Source: Hyphochytrium catenoides (lineage: Eukaryota > Protista > Hyphochytriomycota). Taken from it: DNA of 43,141 nucleotides. The position numbers and the translations under genes are program-made. The DNA lies in contig FLMG01004729.1 of the NCBI GenBank assembly GCA_900088475.1, positions 1 to 43,141 on the forward strand, read 5' to 3'. The notes beneath the pieces are model-generated. The model saw nothing but the letters and a program-made list of their open reading frames with translations. It was not told where the DNA came from and did not search any database. Every line of letters starts with the position of its first letter. Within the stretch, counting starts at the first letter, position 1. Positions 17,495 to 33,983 of this stretch are shown piece by piece.

Positions 17495-20400
17495 ATGAGT
17501 GGATCCGGCCTCCCACTCAGGTGGAGGAGGAAGCATGAACAAGAGCAAGAGGAAGGTGATACCACCATCCCACAGAGACAAGGAGAAGAAGAGGGATGGG
17601 CGACCCTCATATGCCGGCAGCCCGATAACTTATCCCCTTCGTCCATCTCTTTCACACATGAGGGGATACCGATGATGGTTGACAAGAGTCTTCAGGACGC
17701 CGCTGAAGAGAAGGACTGGGACAGCAAAGACAGATCTTTGCATGGCAATGTAGAGAGGGAGGATGGCGAACACATGGAGCAGTCACTCCATCCGGCAGGG
17801 GAAGGAGATCCTAAGTCCTGGAACTTGACCTGGGCGGGCCTTTCATACTGGTGGAAGAACTGGAAAATTAGGGCAGTAATGGGCATATTTTGGCTCTTTT
17901 TCCTCCGTAAGCTGCCTTTCTGTCTTATCTTCTCGCTCTAGATAACTGCTCTGCACTATAGCTGTCTTGCAAAGCTCCTCGTTGGCTGGCCTATCATCGA
18001 TAAGCACTTTTCTTCCCTGCTTTCTTTTCTCTCCCTTACGCTTCTGTCTTTCAGTCTCTTTTGGGAAGTGAGTGTGCAATTATGTCGTACTCTCGCTGGA
18101 CATTTGACAGCATTCATTGTCCTTACACATGTGCAGTATTCATTTTGTGCTTGGCCGGTCCACGCTCTGTGCCCTCTCCTCTGTTTGTCCTTTTGTCGAC
18201 ACCCCTCTCCTCAGTTTCTCCCTCCCGATCTCCTCCCGCTACGGAGGCCCCTCACTGCCGCTGTCTCTCTCTTTTCTCACTCTGCCGTGTATTGCATAAC
18301 TGCGGTCGACTATCTATCGATTAGATGAGATTGTCAGGTATGCTTACCTACTTAGCCTCACTTGCTTCGCCACGTAACCTCATTGGTTAACCAAAGATTC
18401 CGTCTTTTACGCTCACCTATTTTGGTTTGGCTCCTCTGAGCACCTCGGATGTACCGAGCGCCTTTGCTTCTTTGACTACCCTGGGTGGTATTGATTCCAA
18501 GCATCTATGCTGTTGCTTCTGCTTCTTGAGTTTCTCAGATCGACTACCCCGGCGTTCTCGTACCTCTATCTATCCAAGCAATTCTAGCTGATTTTAACTC
18601 TTCCGCTTTCTCTCGCTTTGGCTTACCTTATCTTCATCCTGTGTCCAGCATCATTATCACTGTGGCCCTGGCCGTAATAACTATGAACCGCAGTGTGAGC
18701 CATTATGAGCTCAGCACCTCAGACATTTTCGATGGACTGCACAACAAGAGTCTTATCATCATAAACGATTCTTTTGTCCGCCTCAGAGAAAAGCTACTGA
18801 GAGAGATAAGGACCAATGTTAGTGACTATGTCATGGTGCCGACGTACCCAGCTTTCTCCCTCCGAGATGTAAGCAAACCATCCTTCATTTTTCCGTTGCC
18901 AAAGACGTCCATGGCGCCGAGCGATCCTATTCTGGTGTCTCGCTCAGTACAATGGTGGCTGTGCTCCTCTACACTCATTTGTGATATGCTCTTTCACCTC
19001 TCTATCATTTTTTGTTGCTCCTGCCGCATCGAAGAAGACCGCAATTCTGTGGCTGCTGTGGCTTCTTGGATATAGAGGCTTTATTCTATAACTCTCTATC
19101 AGACTTTGACTCCTTAATATTTCTTAACGGTGCAACCTAAGCTTCGATGTTTGCAATTTGGCGGCGATCGAGGCAAATAAACTCATTGGGTGGCCCTTAT
19201 TCCAAGAAGAACGATACTCTCACGGCGTGGTTGACGCGGCCCCTTCCTCAACATTTCAGGCTATGCTCAGTGGACTGGCCCCAGACGCTCTATTTACTGA
19301 CTACCGGGAGCTCACAGAGGAGAATATTGAGAAGTTCTCTCACCCATTCCTGCACTACATCAGATACAAGCTGCAAGAGTACGACAAGGTGCTCTCCTCT
19401 CTGGGCTTAGGGTTTGATAGAGGTAAATCGGTAGCGAGCAGTTACACTTCTGTCCTGCCTCTGTCTGCCGCCATATCGGCATCCCTTTTCAGGCAATGCA
19501 TGCAAAGTCAGGACCCTATTTGATTCTTCAGAGGCACATTGTGTCCCGAAGGAAGCATGCCCGGACACTTCCATACACTAATCATAGGACCTAATTTACG
19601 GTTGCAGATGGCACTATGTTTGGCATTGCATCCACTACCGAACATGACTTAGTGCCAGATGATGAGGAGCCGGAGTATCATATGTTGCTTCCCTTATACT
19701 CCGCCGACCCGGGTAAGATCCTGCTTGTCATTCTTCTCTCCTAACAGTAGGGCGCCCTACGTAACTTCTCCCTCTACTTGTCTTATTTTATCTATGGCTT
19801 AGACTCCTCCCGTACCTCTTTACCGCAGGCTCTCAAGACTACTGCAACGTGGTCCCAAATGCGTCACGGCAAGCGGTCAACTACCAGCCGCCCACGCGTC
19901 CTGGTTGCAAAACGCAAGCTTGGACGCTTTTAAGATGTGAAGTATGTTAAAATAGTTTTCTTATTTGCCCCTCCCCTTGCTTATGCATTCCCTCTTATTC
20001 TCTTACTCTCTGCTGGGCGTGCCATTATTTCTATTTCTTCGTTGTTGGCATAGTAGTAAAGAAGAACTCTGCGGCTCCTTATTCTAGCTGAAATCCACGG
20101 AGACGACGTGCGAGAGTGCGTCTTCAGCAGAAAGGACCCTAATCGACGGCTATAATGTTCACGACAGAGATTGGTGTAAGCGCATCCTAACCTTACGAAA
20201 TGCCGCTTTGTTGGTGAATCGAGTGGTTGGTGTTGCTATGGTCTATCGTATCTTGTTGGCATCTCGTGTTTTTGCCCTTCCAGCCTCTGATCAAACGATG
20301 AGGGCTTCCTACAGGTCTTTCGACAACTAGATAATTGGAAATTAGGTTCGTTTGCTCCCGCATAATCTAACGTATGCACCAAAATCCCTCACTCTCATTA

Positions 20401-23400
20401 GATATCCAAGTTCGCGAGCTGAATTCGCCGAACCCTTTACCTGCCGAGGGCGGTGCGCTCGGCGTTTATGGCGCCGCATTTTGGTCTCCAATCTACCGGT
20501 TGGCTGCAACGGGAGTCGTTGCCATTACGTTTTGCGTGCCCATACTCGACCCTGAGAGCAAACAGTTTATTGCTGTCACCAAAGCGGATCTTTACCTTCA
20601 AAACCTCTCCACGTACCTACGTGCTCAAAGCTATAATGGCTCGGGAGTCCTATTCGTTATTGAACGAACGAGTATCCCGAACCCCAGATTTCCTACCGTG
20701 AGGACTGAATCTGGCCGATTAGTCGCTTCCTCAGCCTTAGCTGAGCAAATAAATGGGTCCAAGACAAATGTATGACCCTATTCTTTTCAAGTGTCTTGCT
20801 CTGTTCCGAACCCAATACGAGCTTACAGTCTGGGCAACTGCCTTTCTTGCAGCAAAATTTGCTTCTGACACCGGTCAACGCGAGCGCAAATCCAATGGTG
20901 GCGTCTGCTGGCCAAGCACTACTTAAAGCTTACGGCAATAGCTGGAAGGTAAGTTGCGGTAGTAGTTTCATCAATAGTCAACCATGACTTTTTGCTCTGC
21001 TTCATCAACGCTGCCGTTTGACTGCAAACATACTTTCACTGTCTGTCACTCAGAATATACCGAGCTCTGGATCACTGGAGTACGTACACAATAAGGATCC
21101 TGCCCAAGATAACGGGCCCAATAAAAAACAGGATGAAGTCTCTCTATGGTGCGATTCAATGCGCAGCAAACGGCGAGAAGGAGACTCCAGAGAATGTCTA
21201 ACGCTTGACTGGACGGAGTGTGAGTTTGAAGAGATATCTCTTTGTTTAGGGCACTCAAGCCATCCGCGGGCCATGAATTATGTTGACTGTGAAGTGCACC
21301 ATATTGATGTCTTAGTGCCTCTTATTTGACTACCAGATAAAGCCTCTTTAGCCAGGCTCTTGCGCCAAGCAAGTGCTAGACCTTCGTTCGTTTCGTAGGA
21401 CCGTCCTCTCGGAAGCAAGTCTCACAAGGAAGGCTTCTAACACCCTCTTGGTTACTGGTGTAGTGCAACTAGCAGAAGGTCGGGCAAATGGGCTTGATTG
21501 GCTACTTCTCGTCGTTATTCCAGAGTCGGAGTTCTTGGAGACGACAAGAGAAGCTCTTACACAGGCAAAACAAGATTTTACGCAAGAGCGGATGGGTAAG
21601 AGTCATCTGAGACCGCCTGCAATGTCCACACTGCATCTCGCATTCCCTCAAAGCTGCTTCCGTGCCAAACGTCTTCGCAAAACAGGTTTTTCTGTTATGA
21701 ATGTCTTGGGTTCAGTAGTTAAAGGTGTCGACTGGCATATCACTGATTTCTCTTTGGTCATCTCCACGCCTCTCACTGTGCATATCTTCTCCTTTCAATC
21801 ATCTACCTCTTCTAGCTATCAACCTTTCAACCCAGCAAAAGTGGATTATATTCCCCTTTGTGGCACTGGGCTGGATTCTGATTAGCGGTGGCTTTGCCTT
21901 CTTCACTTCCTACGGTCTCGCTAAACCTATGAAGGCCCTTGCCAAGGATATGGCAAAGGTGGCCAAGCTGGATTTGAGGTGAGCGTTGAAGACACTATTA
22001 CTTCGGGTTCTTGGGTATCTGCTCATGGCTTTGCTAAGTGCGAAGTAGCTATTGTTGTGGATTCTTTTCCCAGCAAAATACCCTTGTACTCTGCGCAGCC
22101 TATAACCCAGTCTCTCTGCAAACCTTGGATTTCTGGTCTAAGGCCCTCATTCTGCCGTGTTTAGCGTCTCCAATGTATCAGTGTCATCGCGGATACGGGA
22201 AGTGTTTGATATCACAGATGCATACTCACAAATGCGGAGAGGTGTCCAGAGCTTTGCGAAGTTTGTGCCCCGAACAGTTGTACAGAGAATTGTTACGGGC
22301 GATAGAAAGGTGAGGGAAAGGATAAACACCACTTACAATAAGCCTCAGAGTCTCCTTCTTATCCGACCTCTTTATATCCGTCCGCACTCTGTTTTCTAGG
22401 CTTCCCGCTTGCACACTTATAAGCGTGAGGTAACAGTCCTCTTTAGTGGCATCACAAACTTTGCCACAGTTGCGGAAGACATGGAGCCAGCCCTTGTCGT
22501 AGACTTTCTGCGAGAATACTTCTCCTCAATGGCACGCATAGTGGAAGAGTCACACGGGATTGTTGGTAAGCTAAGCAACCTCTTTTTCTGCTCTACCGAG
22601 CTCTGCGCTGGACTACTGTAACGGAAAGAGATGACTTGCTATCTTATCACGCTTAGCGCCTTCTTAGATTTTTCTGTACGTGCTGACATGCCACCGTCAG
22701 TCTTGGAAAGGTTTCGCCATTTCTCCTGATATTTAGCCCAACTTTCTCTCGCTTTCTGTCCTCAGGTGACTTTATAGGTGACGGGATCATGGCCTTCTGG
22801 AACAGTCCGGATGACGTGGAGGATCATGCTGGGCGGGCCTGCGAATGTGCAATAGAAATGCAGCGGCAATTAGAGCAAATCAATAAGAGACGAACTACGT
22901 TGGGAAAGCAGCAGTTTGAGGGAGAGATTGGCATCAATACTGGGACGGTGCTTACTGGCAACATCGGGAGTCCAGAGAAGATGAAGGTAAGGCGCTTGGA
23001 ATGTTACGACTTGCTAATATATGATCTCTTCTCTTCTGTAGTAGCTGCGTTTCCGACTTCCTTCTTCATTGCCTGTGAAAACGTTTGAGAGCTGATCGCG
23101 GATGGGGCTTGCATGCTCTCGCTAGTTATCTTTCTTCTTTCTTATGCTTTCCCCTCTGTTTTTCTTTGCACGACTCCACGTTGCGACGAGATTTGGTCAT
23201 TGTGATGCAACGTCTCAAGCATTCCCCGCCTTTTGTCTGACTGTTTTGGTCTTTCGTCTTCTTCTTTCAGTTTGGCGTGGTTGGAGACTCTGGTAAGTCA
23301 AAATCAACAGCCGGAAGTGTTACGAAGTGGATCTCGTGGGCCTCTGCTCCTGTGAGGTCCCTCTACTCCTGACGGCCTAAATATTTCCCCCTATATGGGT

Positions 23401-24109
23401 TTCTACCTGTCTTGTAAGGGCTGAGTTCACACGGTCGTCTTATTCTTCGCCGTCTCTGCCAGTGAATCTTGCTAGTCGGGTGCAGCATTTGAATAAGCAG
23501 TACGGGACGCGACGCCTAGTTACCGCTGATACGGCACATAAGATTGCGGAAAAGGGATTTCTGTTCCGCCCAGTTGACAAAGTCACTGTGAGGGGTAGAG
23601 GAAGCTTTACCGAGGTACTTGAGGGAGGAAGAATACGGTCTTTGTTCCAACCACTTGATGTCTAACGTGCGCCTCTTGCGTGCTTCCTTCTTTCATTCCG
23701 CGGCTCTAAGGTGCTAGAGTTGATGGCGGCTAAAGAAGACGTTACTCCTGATCTAGAGGAGCTTTCTAGGCGAACCACACAGGCTTTCATGCTTTATCAG
23801 GCGCAGCAGGTAAAGCAAGTGGCAAAGGGCATGCGAAAAGCCACAATCTCATGGTAGTCGACGCCACTTGGGCCTCTAACTATTGTTCTCTTCCAGTACT
23901 CAGAAGCGTTAACTGTCCTTGAAGAGGCGCAGTTGTATTTTCCTCATGATGGGCCCTTAAAGCGCCTCAAAGCTCGTTGCACGCAAAAGCTAGAATCTAG
24001 TAAAATGCCAGGCCACGAGGACCACAGGAGACAAGAAGAAGGACTGCATGACCCTGAAACTTCGCTGATAGACTCGGCTGGCCAGAGCACTCCCTTAGAC
24101 TTCGACTAG
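17495..24109 (+). CDS. Receptor-type class III nucleotidyl cyclase: TM-dCache_1-TM-HAMP-cyclase-TPR-like tail, ~1016 aa, ~19 exons
   Basis: Exons 17495-17906, 18325-18337 (tentative), 18649-18868, 19260-19422, 19608-19712, 19829-19941, 20088-20175, 20402-20769, 20853-20948, 21054-21148, 21399-21595, 21816-21978, 22165-22309, 22400-22565, 22766-22986, 23271-23292, 23463-23614, 23711-23809, 23897-24109. Cache motifs YNVHDRDWY, WSPIY and GLDWLLLVVIPESEF; HAMP KPMKALAKDMAKVAKLD...SRIREV; S-helix SFAKFVP; cyclase motifs VTVLFSGITNF, FIGDGIMAFWN, GINTGTVLTGNIGS, GDSVNLASRVQ. Confidence 0.85.
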
Positions 24110-27658: not shown

Positions 27659-29305
27659 TCACTTCTCTTGGCGCAGCGTGACGGGAACACAGGGAAGAGT
27701 CGCGCTAGTTCAGCCTTGGCACCGACAGATCTGCTGGTGGGCACCACCCTTCCTTCTGATATCATCATGGACCTTGCAGAAGATTCAACAAGAGGGCGGG
27801 ACCGGAATACTAATCTGATGCTTGCTGCTACCATCCACATCAGAACAGAACGAGGGCATTATAGCGCGAGCTAAAAGGAGTGACTGTTGCATGGCTATAA
27901 AGTGGCGGTGGACAACAATAATATAGCCATATAGCGAGCCAAATGACTGCCTCTGTGAGCTCTTCGGATCAGGTAAGTAATAGCCACCACTAGTAGCTGC
28001 TGGATTGATAAAAGGGAAGGAGAAACATGCTAAATCTGTAGTACAGCTCGCCATGACCGGCTGGCTGCACAGAAAAAGGAGTGTAAGTGCGCGGATGACA
28101 GTTGGTGTCCTAAAGAGGGCCCTCTCCTCCTCCTTCTTGGGTTATGACTGCTGCCGTCCGTAGTCCTCTGTGTCCAGCAGTCTACAGTCTCGTCGACAGA
28201 AGAACGAAACCCCTATTATGTACGGAGACTAAAGAATGAAATTGAAGAGCAACGACATGCTATATGTAAGTACTAGAGGAGCGTAGCCTAGCACATGATG
28301 ACCCAACACCGATCCTCCTACGGCCTCCGTTATGGGCAGGGCAACTAGTAGATAATAAGCGAACGCACGTCCCAAGGAGAGGGCCAGACGGCCGTGTTAA
28401 TATACTCAACCTCACTGCCTCAGTAACCCATCCGTACAGACAACAATAGAGTGTTTGGATTGCGATCGTGATAGGAAATGTCGCAATTCCACCTGAACTA
28501 GCAGGTGCTCAGAACGAAGAAGAAGGCAGCAGCTCATGAAAAGGACTCGGTTCCCATCAATCAAAAGAGAGTGAGATGGTGAAAAACGACTCTCTCTATC
28601 AGCTTGCTGACCTCGAACTAGGATAGCCCGGGAGGTTCTTCGTAAGCAGGCTGTCATCGGCCTTCAATCCGTAAAGAGCTTTGGAATGTCGGTCATGCGT
28701 CTCTAACCAATAGCTTCATCGCGGCCATGCACGCGGATTGAGTCATGTCCTAGCTTGCAGGTGGTAAACAAAACGCTCCATTCTCTCGCTCCTCATCATC
28801 ATCAGGCCATAGATAATGATGATAGTACTGGTGAAAAAAGACAAAGGAGAGATAACAGACCCGGAAGCGAGTGAGTCCCGCTTGACTAGAAGGTAGGGAA
28901 GGTGACGAGAAGGAAGCAAGCAGCACAGAAGGGTGGGAAGGAGGAGCTAGCATGTAGCCAAAGACGCCAAACCTCCAACGGCGACGGTGAAAGGAAAGGT
29001 GCTACCGCCCCCTAGCAGCAGAAACCCCGACTTTTTTTCTCGCTCCCTCACCGCCTCTGACGAAAATACTCGGAGGCACTAGGAGTGAATACTCTGTGTT
29101 AAACTTTTCCTAAAGTGTTCATTTGCACTTCTCGCTAATTTCTAAGGCCAGAGAAACCCTTTACGACAAAATAAGGTATCCTCGTAGAGAGTTGAAGGCC
29201 CAAGAGACGTAACGGCCGCTAGAGAAGTCGTTACATATTGTGGTGCACTCATAATTAGCCATCAGCAACCTTCTCATACAAGCTCACTCTACTTCCCTCC
29301 AGCTT

Positions 29306-29322
29306 CCCTCTCTTTCTCTCTG

Positions 29323-29372
<50 letters not shown>

Positions 29373-29382
29373 CCTCTCTCTT

Positions 29383-29423
<41 letters not shown>

Positions 29424-29457
29424 TCTTTTCTCTTCTTTCCTCTCTCTCCCCCTCTCT
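29306..29457. repeat. (CT)n / (GA)n microsatellite
   Basis: Run of CTCTCT with TTT interruptions. Confidence 0.97.
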
Positions 29458-30711
29458 GTACGAACCACCTAGTAGCCCTTCTTCGCGGTATCTCAGCTTC
29501 TTTCTCCTCTGTCAATGTAATTGACTCTCATGCCCTCGTACCTCAGTGAGGAGAGGGGCCGACGATAGACTGCTCTTCTTCCTCCTTCCTCCATCAGTCC
29601 TGTGCTCCTTAGGCAGGATGACGGGTCATCACCCGCAGAGGGGGAGCGCAGAGAGGGTTTGTGAGGTGACAGGTCCATCACCATCCAGAGGAAACAGTCT
29701 ACGCTGCAGCAGAAGCATCATCCGGCCCGGAAAAGGAGGAAATAAAAACGCAGGGGACTGAAGTCACCCATAGAAGGTGATGGGTCGCCCACAAAAAGCA
29801 GGGGAACACCACGCTGTCAAGCTGTCTATTGGCAGACCACCTTGGCTTAGCTTGTGCCTCTGGGTAGTGAACTGTGGTTGGAGATGAGAACGGACGGGGT
29901 AAGCAGAGGGCTTGTGTTGCACAGACGTCAATGTATAGAGGAAAGAAGCCACCGCCGCCCTGTCTCCTCCACAGAACCAGTAACAACAGTGTGTGGAAAA
30001 TTTAACAGGAAAGCTATGAGGGAAACTGCTCTTTTGTCTGGTCTCTGTTCTCTCTTCTTTCTCTCTCTCTCTTCCCTGTTCTGCTCTACTAAGGCTAGAG
30101 CGTCCTGTCTCCACTTTACTTCCCGACCGGTAGAAGAAGAGAGCTGAGTCTTCCTCTCCTCCTGGGTGACAGATTGATGGGCAGGAGGAGGAGTGGCACC
30201 GAGGGACCTCAAATAGCTAGAAGCTATTCTTTTATAAAGCTGGCATTGGGGCGCTCCGGTTGTTTCCCCTCTTCCTCCTATTTTGGCAGGGCGACTCCTC
30301 GCCCGATGGTGATCCTCTAACTAACTCAGAAAACCTTTCTTTTCATTTCGTCTTTTTTCTCGTTTTCCTGGCTCTCTTTCCATCGAGGTTATCAGTCAGC
30401 CATCGTTGCGTTAGCCTGTCGCTCTCCTTTCTCATCATTTACCGTCATAGCTCCAACTCGATACTCCTTTTCCTGGCTCTGCCTCCCCCACTACACTCGC
30501 TTTCCTGGCTCTGCATTCTTCTGGGTTCCTGGGCTGAGACGACGTCCAGTGTCATGCTTCTCGTGGAGGCTAGTTTGCGGCGACCCAGGTCTGCGTGGAC
30601 CTAATCTGAGCGAGAGCTAGCCCTAACTACGCATCCTAGGGGTGTGCTTTCACGGTGGATATGGATTAAGAATCACCAAACAAGATGAGACGTAGGAATC
30701 TCGCCCGCGCC

Positions 30712-30719: not shown

Positions 30720-30779
30720 CTCCTTCAGTACCGGTCGCTGCGTTGAAAAGGCCACGCTTTGGAGGTTGTGGTTCTAGAG

Positions 30780-33700
30780 ATGAAGGCTAAGGTCATTGCT
30801 TGTGATTCACACTGGAGTAACCCCATCATATCTGGCACGAACGGCAGCGCCACCGAAGATGAACAGCAAAGTAGTAGCGGGCCTGCCGGGGGTCAGAAGT
30901 CATCGGCATGCAACCTTGGTAGCTCTCCCAAGAATGCAGCACGAGCTGTCGAGCCCAGGACAACGAAGAAGGAGGCTGGAGAGCCGTCTTCTCTTGAGTG
31001 CAAAAATCAGGGACACGCAGCATACTTTAGCGCTGAGGTCCCTCCGATGGCCCAAGGCAATGACACTCGCAATCACAGTGGAGAAGCATTGCCAAGCAAA
31101 GAGGTTAAATGCCAAGGGCGCAAAGTGTCTGCAATAGAGGGACTCTCGACCTTCCATCGAGATGGAAGACCCACTCAGAAGCCGATCGGGGTGTACATGG
31201 CAAATATACGGCTCTGCCACAGGTTCATCGAGGTACTCAGTGCTCTTCAACAGCACCAGAAAGCAGGAATCGTCACGAAGCGGGAGGGACAGAAAGAAGG
31301 TGATTCTTTGGACAACAGGGAGCAACAGGACTATCGGGCCAGTGTCATCGACACTTACCTTCAACGCATCGAGAGTCAGATTGTTCAGATAGCACAGACT
31401 ACATGTCGTGTCTCACTCGCGTCAGCGGCTCCACCATCGTCTCGTAGTGAGTCATTGGAGACTAGCCGCTCCACCTGGGGTGCTAAGGCCCTATCGACAA
31501 AGTCTCTGTTCGTTAGAAAGGTAGACGGAGACGGCGGGGGTTGGAGAGGAGCAGGAAGACCTTCTGCTTCCCCAAAGAACATGCAGGCACGGCGCATCAA
31601 CGTGTCCAAACATCAGCGGGTCTCTCCCCAGTCATCTTTCGCAACAGACAATAACCCTGGCGCGGAAGATGCATCCATTGCTAGCACTTTACCATTGTCA
31701 TCCTCCGCATCATCAGGGTCGTCGCAACGGGGTCGTTCTAGCTCAACCCTCTCTCTTCCTCTCCGAGGCGTGGTCAGTATAAAATTGAAGCTGAAGCAAC
31801 GCCAAGAGACCTTAAGAAGTCTCTTTACCGTTTCCAGAACGCGACAAGCGCGCAGGCTTCGCTTTCTGTTAGCTCGGAAGCCATATGTGGAGCTTGGGGC
31901 AGAGCAAAGCCATCTTTCTCTAATGCATAAGCTCCTAGGCCAGAGCTTCACGCACACGTGGTGGAGAGCCAAGGCGATAACAGCTCCTGCAGCGTGGCTG
32001 GCGTTCGTCTTTGCAATATGCGCTTTGCCCCTTACCCTGATACTCGGACCTGCCATCACTGACACGGCCAAGTTGACCACAGGCTTGCTATGCGTCGCTG
32101 CGGGTCTTTACTGTGGGATATTCTCCACGTCGCTCATGAATTACCGCCTTCTTTGTATGATGCTTAGCACCTTCGACCTCCTTTTCCTCTTCACGGAGAT
32201 GTTTCTGTACGTTGGCTCGCTGGTCATCGTGCTCTGCGGTGCGCCCATCGGATACTGCGCCGCTATCTCCATAGCTTTTGGCTACTTCTTTACCATTGTA
32301 TACGACTGCTTTCCGCTCTCCATACGGAAGAAGTGTAGGGCTGGATTGCTGGTGGCATGTATCTGGAACTTTCTTCTTTGGCTTATCCTCTATACGCAGC
32401 CTCCTGAAGGACTATGTAGGTACCACGTGAACATGAGGACAGGTCAATTGACAGATGAGCATTACGATGGCTGGAAGTTCTCCCTCTTTGACTTCTGCCT
32501 GAACCGAGGGCTTAACATCGTCATCCTCTTCACAAAGATGACGTGCATGACCTTTAAATATCCCACTGACTGTGTGGTGCTCAAGTCACGTCTTCGCCTT
32601 ATGGAGTGTGAGGTGGCGAACCGTACGCCGTATGAAGATGACTTGAGCAGCACGTCATCTGGAGGACGGACAGGAGAAGGTAGCAGTGATGGACTAACGG
32701 GCCCCATCGGCAGGGTGAAAGGGGAGGATGGGGAAGAGGAAGAGGAGAAGGAAAGAGGAAGTCAAAAGGAAAGAAGAAAGTGTTCCACGACGGCGCTCTG
32801 TGACTCCATGCTAGCATATCTTTCGACGTCCACTACCTTTCACGACCACGAGTGGAAGTGCATCGTTGACGTCTATCTGCTCCTGTCTGAAATGCGCAAA
32901 GGTACCACCAGGCTGAAAGATGCTACTAAGGCACCTCCACTGGCCCCATCTTCTACTGTCCTTTCTCCTGTTACTTCTCTATCTTCGTCGACGCCAGGCG
33001 ACGGTGAGATTCCTGAACTTTCATCGGGAGAGAGGCCCTCAAGTGGTGACGAAGCAACCATGATAGGATCCCATCAACGCAGTGGCCGCTTCGTTTTCTT
33101 GGCCCAACTTGGGAGAGGAGGACATGAGGGCCATTTCTCTGCTTCCAGGAGGACAAAAGGCAAGTACGCGCTGACAGTGGTAAAGCTGCATTCCGAAATG
33201 ACAGAACAGGAGAGCGGACAAACAGTCATGATGCTCCTCTTCGGACAAAAGTTTACGGAGGTCTGGTTTCAATGGCGCAGACTTCTAACTCCGTTAGCCC
33301 GGCTCTCCTTCGTGACCTATATGGCCATGGCGCTAGTGCTGATTATGAATGCTGGTTCGCCATCCACTGAAGCGCTCATGGGCTCCTTGCTTCTGCTGAA
33401 TTCTCTCATTATGATGATCTTCTACTCCTCGCTCATGAACTACTGGATCTTTCGGTGCTGTCTAAGAATGTTTGACGTGGCATTTTTCATGGTCCACTTG
33501 CTGGTCTACTCCTTCTTTCTTGCTAGCGCTCTCTGCTTTACCCCAGGGGGCTGGTGTCTTGGCATCAGTTGGTTCTTGGCTAATGCCATTACTTTCTTCT
33601 ACGACTCCATGCCTCTACGAACAAGAAACAAGAGCAAAGGAGTTGCCTTTCTGGGAACGGTCTTTGTGATAGTAGTGGAGTTGCTCTACTATACACGACT

Positions 33701-33983
33701 ACCGCCAGGCTTATGTACCTACCGTGTCGGGATGTCTGACGACGGGAATGTTTGGCTGAGGGACAACGAACTGCATCAAGGTTTATCAGTCTTTGAAGCT
33801 GGCCTCAACAGCGGACTGACGTTAATCGTCCTGCTGTCCAGAATCTGCTTTGCGGTCATCAATGATCCTGAGGATTGCGTCGTGCTCCGAACTCGGATGC
33901 GTCTGATTGCTGTGCCTGACTTTACTGCCATGGCCCCACTAGATTTTCTGCCAGCGGTCCAACCAACTCAACATCCACAATGA
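30780..33983 (+). CDS. Uncharacterised polytopic membrane protein with two internal 6-TM repeats (paralog A), ~1067 aa, intronless
   Basis: Long ORF, first in-frame ATG at 30780. Two hydrophobic blocks share the motifs SLMNY..FD..F, YDC/S.PL..R.K, PP.GLC.Y and P.DCVVL.SRLRL. Collinear with 36036-38996. Confidence 0.85.
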   Translation: MKAKVIACDSHWSNPIISGTNGSATEDEQQSSSGPAGGQKSSACNLGSSPKNAARAVEPRTTKKEAGEPSSLECKNQGHAAYFSAEVPPMAQGNDTRNHSGEALPSKEVKCQGRKVSAIEGLSTFHRDGRPTQKPIGVYMANIRLCHRFIEVLSALQQHQKAGIVTKREGQKEGDSLDNREQQDYRASVIDTYLQRIESQIVQIAQTTCRVSLASAAPPSSRSESLETSRSTWGAKALSTKSLFVRKVDGDGGGWRGAGRPSASPKNMQARRINVSKHQRVSPQSSFATDNNPGAEDASIASTLPLSSSASSGSSQRGRSSSTLSLPLRGVVSIKLKLKQRQETLRSLFTVSRTRQARRLRFLLARKPYVELGAEQSHLSLMHKLLGQSFTHTWWRAKAITAPAAWLAFVFAICALPLTLILGPAITDTAKLTTGLLCVAAGLYCGIFSTSLMNYRLLCMMLSTFDLLFLFTEMFLYVGSLVIVLCGAPIGYCAAISIAFGYFFTIVYDCFPLSIRKKCRAGLLVACIWNFLLWLILYTQPPEGLCRYHVNMRTGQLTDEHYDGWKFSLFDFCLNRGLNIVILFTKMTCMTFKYPTDCVVLKSRLRLMECEVANRTPYEDDLSSTSSGGRTGEGSSDGLTGPIGRVKGEDGEEEEEKERGSQKERRKCSTTALCDSMLAYLSTSTTFHDHEWKCIVDVYLLLSEMRKGTTRLKDATKAPPLAPSSTVLSPVTSLSSSTPGDGEIPELSSGERPSSGDEATMIGSHQRSGRFVFLAQLGRGGHEGHFSASRRTKGKYALTVVKLHSEMTEQESGQTVMMLLFGQKFTEVWFQWRRLLTPLARLSFVTYMAMALVLIMNAGSPSTEALMGSLLLLNSLIMMIFYSSLMNYWIFRCCLRMFDVAFFMVHLLVYSFFLASALCFTPGGWCLGISWFLANAITFFYDSMPLRTRNKSKGVAFLGTVFVIVVELLYYTRLPPGLCTYRVGMSDDGNVWLRDNELHQGLSVFEAGLNSGLTLIVLLSRICFAVINDPEDCVVLRTRMRLIAVPDFTAMAPLDFLPAVQPTQHPQ

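Follow-up and report, generated by a model that had tools for sequence, protein, structure and literature searches.

An intron-split amino-acid sensor motif in a predicted dCache_1 receptor cyclase of Hyphochytrium catenoides

Results

A sixteen-exon receptor cyclase gene

We analysed a stretch of 43,141 nucleotides from the hyphochytrid Hyphochytrium catenoides (contig FLMG01004729.1, assembly GCA_900088475.1), hereafter called the window. Between 17495 and 24109 its plus strand carries a gene that we model as 16 exons and 15 GT-AG introns, encoding a protein of 989 residues. The predicted protein starts with ~160 cytosolic residues, followed by a first transmembrane helix (TM1, residues 162-176), a 429-residue ectodomain and a second transmembrane helix (TM2, 606-626); beyond TM2 a linker leads to a cyclase domain (~708-890), and the protein closes with a helical tail. 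Within the ectodomain, at 20151-20590, lies a dCache_1 amino-acid motif that is interrupted by an intron. A first-pass annotation of this DNA had claimed a eukaryotic, fully intronised protein with bacterial-type architecture, and the 15 GT-AG introns and the order TM1, dCache_1, TM2, HAMP-like linker and class III cyclase bear that claim out. Taken together, sequence comparisons and the predicted fold of a homologue make a bacterial-type amino-acid sensor on a receptor cyclase well supported.

The gene model is based on open reading frames, GT-AG sites, tblastn with P0005 (a 999-residue homologue lying uninterrupted on a 3252-nucleotide Logan contig) and comparison with paralogues from the same genome. 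Its parts are as follows.

17495-17875, plus strand: putative exon 1, with the ATG at 17495; cytosolic N-terminal region, based only on the open frame and GT-AG options
18539-18868, plus strand: exon 2, with TM1 (VSSIIITVALAVITM, 18641-18685, by hydropathy) and the start of the long N-terminal ectodomain helix
19260-19422, plus strand: exon 3, ectodomain, AMLSGLAPDALF...GLGFDR; the acceptor at 19260 has a pyrimidine tract and paralogue exons start at the equal residue
19608-19726, plus strand: exon 4, DGTMFGIAS...LYSADPG, covering the strands that open the membrane-distal module, by homology to the paralogue C3158 and to P0005
20088-20175, plus strand: exon 5, ...TTCESASSAERTLIDG-YNVHDRDW, ending in the first base of the Tyr codon that intron 5 splits; contains Y353, R358 and W360
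20176-20401, plus strand: intron 5, GTAAGC...CATTAG, 226 nucleotides, phase 1, splitting the Tyr codon of WY
20402-20769, plus strand: exon 6, with Y361, the clade-specific loop insertion IQVRELNSPNPLPAEGGALGVYGAAF, WSPIY, TKAD and the remainder of the distal module
20853-20948, plus strand: exon 7, QNLLLTPVNASANPMVASAGQALLKAYGNSWK, a helix of the membrane-proximal module
21352-21595, plus strand: exon 8, the final strands of the proximal module (GLDWLLLVVIPESEFL), then the helix into TM2
21816-21978, plus strand: exon 9, TM2 (WIIFPFVALGWILISGGFAFF, 21842-21904, by hydropathy) and the first HAMP-like linker helix KPMKALAKDMAKVAKLDL
22165-22309, plus strand: exon 10, the second HAMP-like helix SSRIREVFDITDAYSQMRRG and the helix into the cyclase
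22400-22565, plus strand: exon 11, start of the class III cyclase (Pfam PF00211, E 1.5e-6, 28.4 bits)
22766-22986, plus strand: exon 12, cyclase core, GDFIGDG with the second metal Asp (Pfam PF00211, E 3e-6, 27.4 bits)
23271-23292, plus strand: exon 13, a 22-nucleotide mini-exon, FGVVGDS, in which Gly occupies the second specificity position, from GT-AG fit and homology
23463-23614, plus strand: exon 14, VNLASRV with the transition-state Asn and Arg present, end of the cyclase; weak PF00211 match
23711-23809 and 23897-24109 (stop included), plus strand: exons 15 and 16, helical C-terminal tail, conserved with P0005, L009 (a Logan contig described below) and C3158

Exon 2 ends in ...AFSLRD followed by gtaagc, and the donor after RD is conserved in the paralogues. 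For exon 3, acceptor 19173 was ruled out, as the paralogues point to 19260. Exon 8 aligns with GLDWLxVVVxPExDF of bacterial dCache_1 proteins. The protein has two hydrophobic helices, a Lys-rich sequence after TM2, and N-x-S/T sequons that number nine in the ectodomain and four elsewhere; the Lys-rich sequence and the sequon distribution fit a sensor that faces outside. Putative intron 1 (17876-18538) is strongly pyrimidine-rich on the plus strand, with an AT skew of -0.30 and a GC skew of -0.22 in 18001-19000, and two different donor/acceptor pairs preserve the frame across it, one of which adds a second hydrophobic stretch ahead of TM1.

The motif and its split codon

On the plus strand, positions 20151-20175 read TAT AAT GTT CAC GAC AGA GAT TGG T, preceded by GGC and followed by GTAAGC, which supplies the donor GT at 20176-20177. 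The acceptor AG (20400-20401) closes a pyrimidine-rich tract (20385-20401) that ends in CATTAG, and exon 6 begins at 20402 with AT ATC CAA. Excision of intron 5 joins the T at 20175 to the AT at 20402-20403 in a Tyr codon, giving YNVHDRDWY. In the protein model the motif residues are Y353 (20151-20153), R358 (20166-20168), W360 (20172-20174) and Y361 (20175 with 20402-20403). The Tyr of WSPIY follows as Y392 (20494-20496), 31 positions past Y361, and the Asp of TKAD as D423 (20587-20589), 31 positions past Y392 with 30 residues between. The coding stretches on the two sides of the intron lie in different frames and the read-through frame meets a stop at 20328, so only the removal of 3n+1 bases can join both. 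All numbers given in the first-pass annotation for a splice from 20175 to 20402 that creates an exact YxxxxRxWY were right, as was its placement of an Asp 31 residues past the Tyr of WSPIY.

The bare pattern Y....R.W is not rare, with five occurrences in the six frames of the window against three expected, and the motif by itself is therefore no proof. What raises it above chance, judging from sequence comparison, is its place in an ectodomain homologous to dCache_1 and its conservation. Besides the window copy, exon 6 has six matches in the genome, distributed over five contigs. Five of these six copies carry YNxxxRxW followed by T and then GT in the same phase, and in each the first pyrimidine-tract acceptor restores a Tyr that runs into x-x-VRELN(S/T)P or a close variant; the introns concerned measure 68, 121, 124, 171 and 289 nucleotides. 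On contig C857 (paralogue 7), which ends inside the gene, there was no YNxxxRxW in any frame. When the spliced distal modules were aligned, all six motif positions were invariant in the paralogues, as against 22 of 108 ungapped columns (20%) among five paralogues, and over exon 6 the paralogues are only 33-50% identical. Furthermore, P0005 carries a contiguous YDATQRPWY at the equivalent place, and a 31-row family alignment (A2, which excludes short exon pieces that MAFFT misplaced in alignment A1) shows conservation of 90% or more for R, W, Y, Y and D. The predicted junction 20175/20402 thus rests on five other paralogues with the same phase 1 split and on an uninterrupted homologue.

The first-pass annotation had also remarked on a long WY-to-Y spacer of ~30 residues, and we counted 30 residues between, compared with ~14 usual in bacterial members. 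In the family MAFFT alignment the window protein aligns to P0005 with one 16-residue insertion; it separates the helix that follows WY from the strand that bears WSPIY. The paralogues have 11-20 extra residues at the same loop, variable in length, and by these alignments the long spacer is a clade-specific loop insertion of 11-20 residues. In alpha2delta a VWA domain is inserted between the same two motif halves (PMC8915833), which indicates that the loop tolerates insertions and that WY-to-Y spacing is not a strict criterion.

Identity and fold of the ectodomain

Pfam matched exon 6 to dCache_1 at 15.2 bits (E 0.016) and to MCP-like_PDC_1 at 17 bits, and in a six-frame dCache_1 scan of the genome only the paralogue on C857 matched, at 28.9 bits. 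An HMMER search of 1.84 billion representatives returned only 11 relatives of exon 6. Pfam identified dCache_1 in each of the nine full-length matches that were scanned, in eight cases above the cut-off, and the named relatives are cyanobacterial or from Incisomonas marina. A bacterial-only profile matched residues 384-581 of the spliced model (60 bits, E 1e-20), reaching through the closing GLDWLLLVVIPESEF strand of the membrane-proximal module. P0005 is collinear with the cyanobacterial dCache_1-HAMP-cyclase P0021 from end to end over 695 residues (E 3e-58).

The AlphaFold2 model of the P0005 ectodomain (A2) had a mean predicted local distance difference test score (pLDDT) of 81, with 87-97 around the motif, and a predicted template-modelling score (pTM) of 0.71. 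When this model was compared with the PDB by Foldseek, it matched double-Cache ligand-binding domains, mostly amino-acid chemoreceptors (PscC, Tlp3, PctA, PctB, Mlp24, Mlp37 and CtaA), with target template-modelling scores of 0.54-0.72 among crystal structures. The best PDB sequences for the P0005 distal module in phmmer were PscC, PctA, PctC, alpha2delta-1, PctB and Mlp37. Against PctA (YDPRSRPWY), the Y/R/W/Y/Y/D of P0005 are in register with Y121/R126/W128/Y129/Y144/D173, and Y392 and D423 of the window protein share columns with Y407 and D438 of P0005 and with Y144 and D173 of PctA.

Gumerov et al. (2022) described the amino-acid motif as one whose first three residues bind the carboxylate and whose Y144 and D173 bind the amino group, with a permitted Y-x(27-34)-D spacing (PMC8915833); the 30 residues between Y392 and D423 fall within this range. 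The position of R126 separates amino-acid from amine sensors (PMC10589655), and the window protein keeps Arg there (R358). These results indicated that the first-pass annotation had put the dCache_1 amino-acid motif in the right structural place, with P0005 in register with PctA, fold matches to amino-acid chemoreceptors and the Arg126 equivalent retained.

Three proteins of Incisomonas marina, a marine MAST-3 stramenopile, in EukProt (P0002, P0134 and P0135) have three to five tandem dCache_1 modules, most with the full Y-x4-R-x-W-Y...Y...D motif. In P0002 and P0135, both multi-module proteins, Pfam gave no VWA match, and it found no output domain in the Incisomonas proteins.

Linker and cyclase domain

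In an hhalign comparison the eukaryotic linker alignment matched bacterial TM2 plus HAMP with a probability of 96.8% (E 2e-10, 71 columns), a score to which TM2 contributes. Pfam PF00211 (Guanylate_cyc) matched three exons (11, 12 and 14), of which exons 11 and 12 exceeded the cut-off of 21.9 bits. The cyclase keeps the second metal Asp (IGDG) and the transition-state Asn and Arg (VNLASRV), and its first metal-binding Asp is replaced by Gly (GGC, 22448-22450; VTVLFSGITNF). At this first site Asp is present in four paralogues, L009 and P0005 (FSD or LCD); C3158 is not covered there. Class III cyclases build their active sites across a dimer, and both Asp residues are needed in one chain. It follows that a homodimer of the window copy should be inactive, and we consider it probably so from sequence. 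The direct coupling to cyclic nucleotide signalling claimed in the first-pass annotation is weakened accordingly, as the protein alone would probably form no active cyclase.

Specificity positions were located by aligning P0005 to CyaB (3r5g). The window protein has Asp (GDFIGDG, 22766-22786) where adenylyl cyclases have Lys, and Gly (FGVVGDS, 23271-23292) where they have Asp. The first of these, Asp, is common to all hyphochytrid paralogues, the Gly is found in both paralogues in which the mini-exon is covered, and P0005 has Asp at both.

The catalytic sites of the paralogues differ from one another. In C368 (L013) the second metal Asp is replaced by Gly (VGGGMM), and in C4213 (L014) the Asn and Arg are missing, with VEVANT in place of VNxASR. 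C1868a, C1868b and L009 are canonical at all catalytic sites, as is C3158 where covered. The complementary losses suggest C1-like and C2-like chains that may pair, as asymmetric heterodimers would leave.

Phylogeny and other features

A maximum-likelihood tree, unrooted, was built from 44 cyclase domains; C3158 and C368 had too many missing positions and were left out. The four paralogues included, the window copy among them, and L009 formed a clade (support 100/99), which joined P0005, the Pyrodinium bahamense transcript P0145 and P0143 (99/92). The window copy stands outside the clade of the other three paralogues placed in the tree, on a branch of 0.49. The first-pass annotation had called for a comparison with bacterial Cache-HAMP-cyclases, and its outcome differs between the two ends of the protein: the named proteins nearest to the ectodomain are bacterial, whereas the cyclase domains of cyanobacterial dCache_1-HAMP-cyclases sit elsewhere in the tree.

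Two adjoining paralogous Cache-cyclase genes lie on opposite strands of C1868 (~22.9-28 kb, plus; 29-35 kb, minus) and are mutual closest relatives in the cyclase tree. L009, a contig of Logan SRR28521185, carries an intron-bearing Cache-cyclase gene that is nested within the hyphochytrid paralogues as sister to the C1868 pair, which indicates that a close relative of H. catenoides was present in that sample.

Elsewhere in the window, 29188-29546 is a CT-rich simple repeat that translates as long SLSLSL runs in three frames, and 30747-33980 is an intronless open frame of 1078 codons with repeated hydrophobic blocks, in which Pfam gave no match at E 0.1.

Discussion

Our preferred reading, to which we give a probability of roughly 0.55, is that 20151-20590 encodes that part of the membrane-distal module which forms the ligand pocket in a dCache_1AA receptor with a class III cyclase; we infer its ligand class, signalling route and partner from sequence and from the model of a homologue. 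By homology, a free amino acid would be bound at its carboxylate by Y353, R358 and W360 and at its amino group by Y392 and D423, and Y361, encoded by the split codon, would be a structural aromatic residue. Because the pocket has the full dCache_1AA signature, the most likely ligand would be an L-amino acid or a closely related derivative, for example gamma-aminobutyric acid. The binding signal would pass from the C-terminal helix through TM2 and the HAMP-like linker to the dimeric cyclase domain. That last step would work only if the window copy were paired with a paralogue supplying both Asp residues; otherwise it would be a sensing or regulatory pseudo-cyclase.

Several observations weigh against this reading. 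The Pfam gathering score of 45 bits for dCache_1 (PF02743) was reached neither by exon 6 (15.2 bits) nor by P0005 (24.7 bits). With hmmalign the N-terminal half of the window ectodomain gave no alignment to the bacterial profile, so the alignment of the motif rests on the family MAFFT alignment. The pocket geometry is taken from P0005, which is ~30-40% identical and has no insertion, and the 16-residue insertion is adjacent to the pocket and could alter or block it. Pfam HAMP (PF00672) matched neither the exon pieces nor the P0005 linker. In the cyclase, the Gly at the first metal site and the residues at both specificity positions count on the same side. Finally, the gene model is uncertain at the 5' end of the first exon, where the alternative donor 17907 would add a hydrophobic stretch, and at the exon 4/5 junction, where the consensus-like donor 19713 is out of phase with acceptor 20088; the other junctions have consensus-like sites and agree with homologues.

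The pocket may instead have been retuned, in that a dCache_1 domain with an inherited motif and an 11-20-residue insertion would bind either nothing or another small molecule (an amine, a peptide or a modified amino acid). The insertion is restricted to the clade and sits between the two motif halves, the residue after the first Tyr is Asn and not the usual Asp, the Foldseek list includes binders of uracil, uric acid and histamine, and related dCache_1 families have evolved new ligands from an amino-acid sensor (PMC10589655). However, six paralogues that have diverged to 33-50% identity show no variation at any of the six motif residues, the carboxylate-binding Arg among them, and alpha2delta retains binding of the amino-acid type despite a whole VWA domain at the same site (PMC8915833). 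We therefore regard retuning as possible and clearly less probable than amino-acid binding. Slightly less probable again is that the window copy is either a pseudo-cyclase that has lost catalysis or a paralogue in decay, whose sensor may work and which would make no cyclic nucleotide alone or paired. Among the seven related sequences with coverage of the first metal site, only the window copy has an Asp-to-Gly change, and it falls outside the clade of the other paralogues in the tree. On the other hand, its reading frame runs intact through 16 exons, it retains the second Asp together with the Asn and Arg, and the losses in C4213 (Asn/Arg) and C368 (second Asp) are complementary, as expected for heterodimers with one active site.

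The two other alternatives concern the DNA itself. A wrong junction, or a chance motif arising from a convenient choice of splice sites, might be suspected from the five occurrences of Y....R.W in the six frames of the window against three expected and from a second in-frame acceptor at 20411, which would give Phe. Yet six paralogues share the split codon, its phase and the residues that follow while their introns differ in length and sequence, P0005 has the same motif in the same place without interruption, and the flanking exons, though in different frames, are both homologous to one continuous dCache_1; by this comparison the alternative is nearly refuted and very improbable. Bacterial contamination of the assembly could be invoked for the architecture and for the bacterial affinity of the closest named ectodomain relatives, and we give it next to no chance. 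The 15 spliceosomal-type introns refute it, and intron positions are shared with another five to six copies, of which five have the motif, on five other contigs. In addition, the neighbouring genes are eukaryotic, and the cyclase domain groups with a dinoflagellate transcript.

The window protein resembles the bacterial amino-acid chemoreceptors PctA/PctB/PctC, Mlp24/Mlp37, Tlp3, CtaA and PscC in its double-Cache fold, as modelled for the homologue, in the six motif residues in register and in its position between two transmembrane helices. Those receptors differ in having a methyl-accepting chemotaxis protein signalling domain in place of the cyclase and an ectodomain of ~250-270 residues compared with 429, the window protein having much longer N-terminal helices; the insertion in the clade between WY and the third Tyr and the intron-bearing eukaryotic gene are further differences. 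The bacterial dCache_1(AA)-HAMP-Guanylate_cyc proteins (from Legionella, and the cyanobacterial P0021, P0027, P0028 and P0043) have the identical domain order and include the closest named ectodomain relatives, and one of them, the Legionella pneumophila dCache_1AA cyclase WP_154766400.1, binds amino acids (PMC8915833). Several of the cyanobacterial proteins have Phe for the first Tyr, while the window protein is set apart by its introns, long cytosolic N-terminus, C-terminal tail and the loss of one metal Asp. In Naegleria, a Cache-containing 'bacterial-type adenylate cyclase' has been attributed to horizontal transfer (Upadhyay et al. 2016, PMC4822843); compared by description only, it too joins a eukaryotic Cache sensor to a class III cyclase, in another lineage (Heterolobosea as opposed to stramenopiles). 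The architecture is therefore less novel than the first-pass annotation implied, being preceded by the bacterial dCache_1AA cyclases and the Naegleria protein. Our full-text literature searches found no paper on Cache cyclases in stramenopiles.

Alpha2delta and CACHD1 share the motif with the window protein and have the same WY-to-third-Tyr loop interrupted, by a whole VWA domain and with no enzymatic output, in contrast to 16 residues and a cyclase output here (PMC8915833). A VWA domain was stated to be inserted in all eukaryotic dCache_1 proteins (PMC8915833); the hyphochytrid family is without it and conflicts with that statement.

In mammalian membrane adenylyl cyclases, C1 and C2 form a pseudo-heterodimer in which one half is without the metal-binding Asp and the other without Asn/Arg. 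By this likeness the window copy and C368 look C2-like and C4213 C1-like, with the difference that here each half would form a receptor chain in its own right and carry its own sensor, a pairing that we infer. More speculatively, and at lower odds than either the retuned pocket or the dead cyclase, the hyphochytrid family could consist of amino-acid-gated receptor cyclases split into C2-like (the window copy and C368), C1-like (C4213) and canonical chains. Active enzymes would then be obligate heterodimers of two different Cache sensors, acting as a two-ligand coincidence detector that could guide zoospore chemotaxis to amino acids.

If amino acids are indeed bound, this eukaryotic receptor would sense free amino acids through a bacterial pocket, feed cyclic AMP or cyclic GMP signalling and do so without a VWA insertion, and it would point to a second, later route by which such sensors entered eukaryotes. 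The catalytic residues missing from some paralogues bear on whether receptor cyclases outside animals act as asymmetric heterodimers. The swimming spores of hyphochytrids and of their oomycete relatives are drawn to amino acids, and the Cache-cyclase family provides receptor candidates for both groups.

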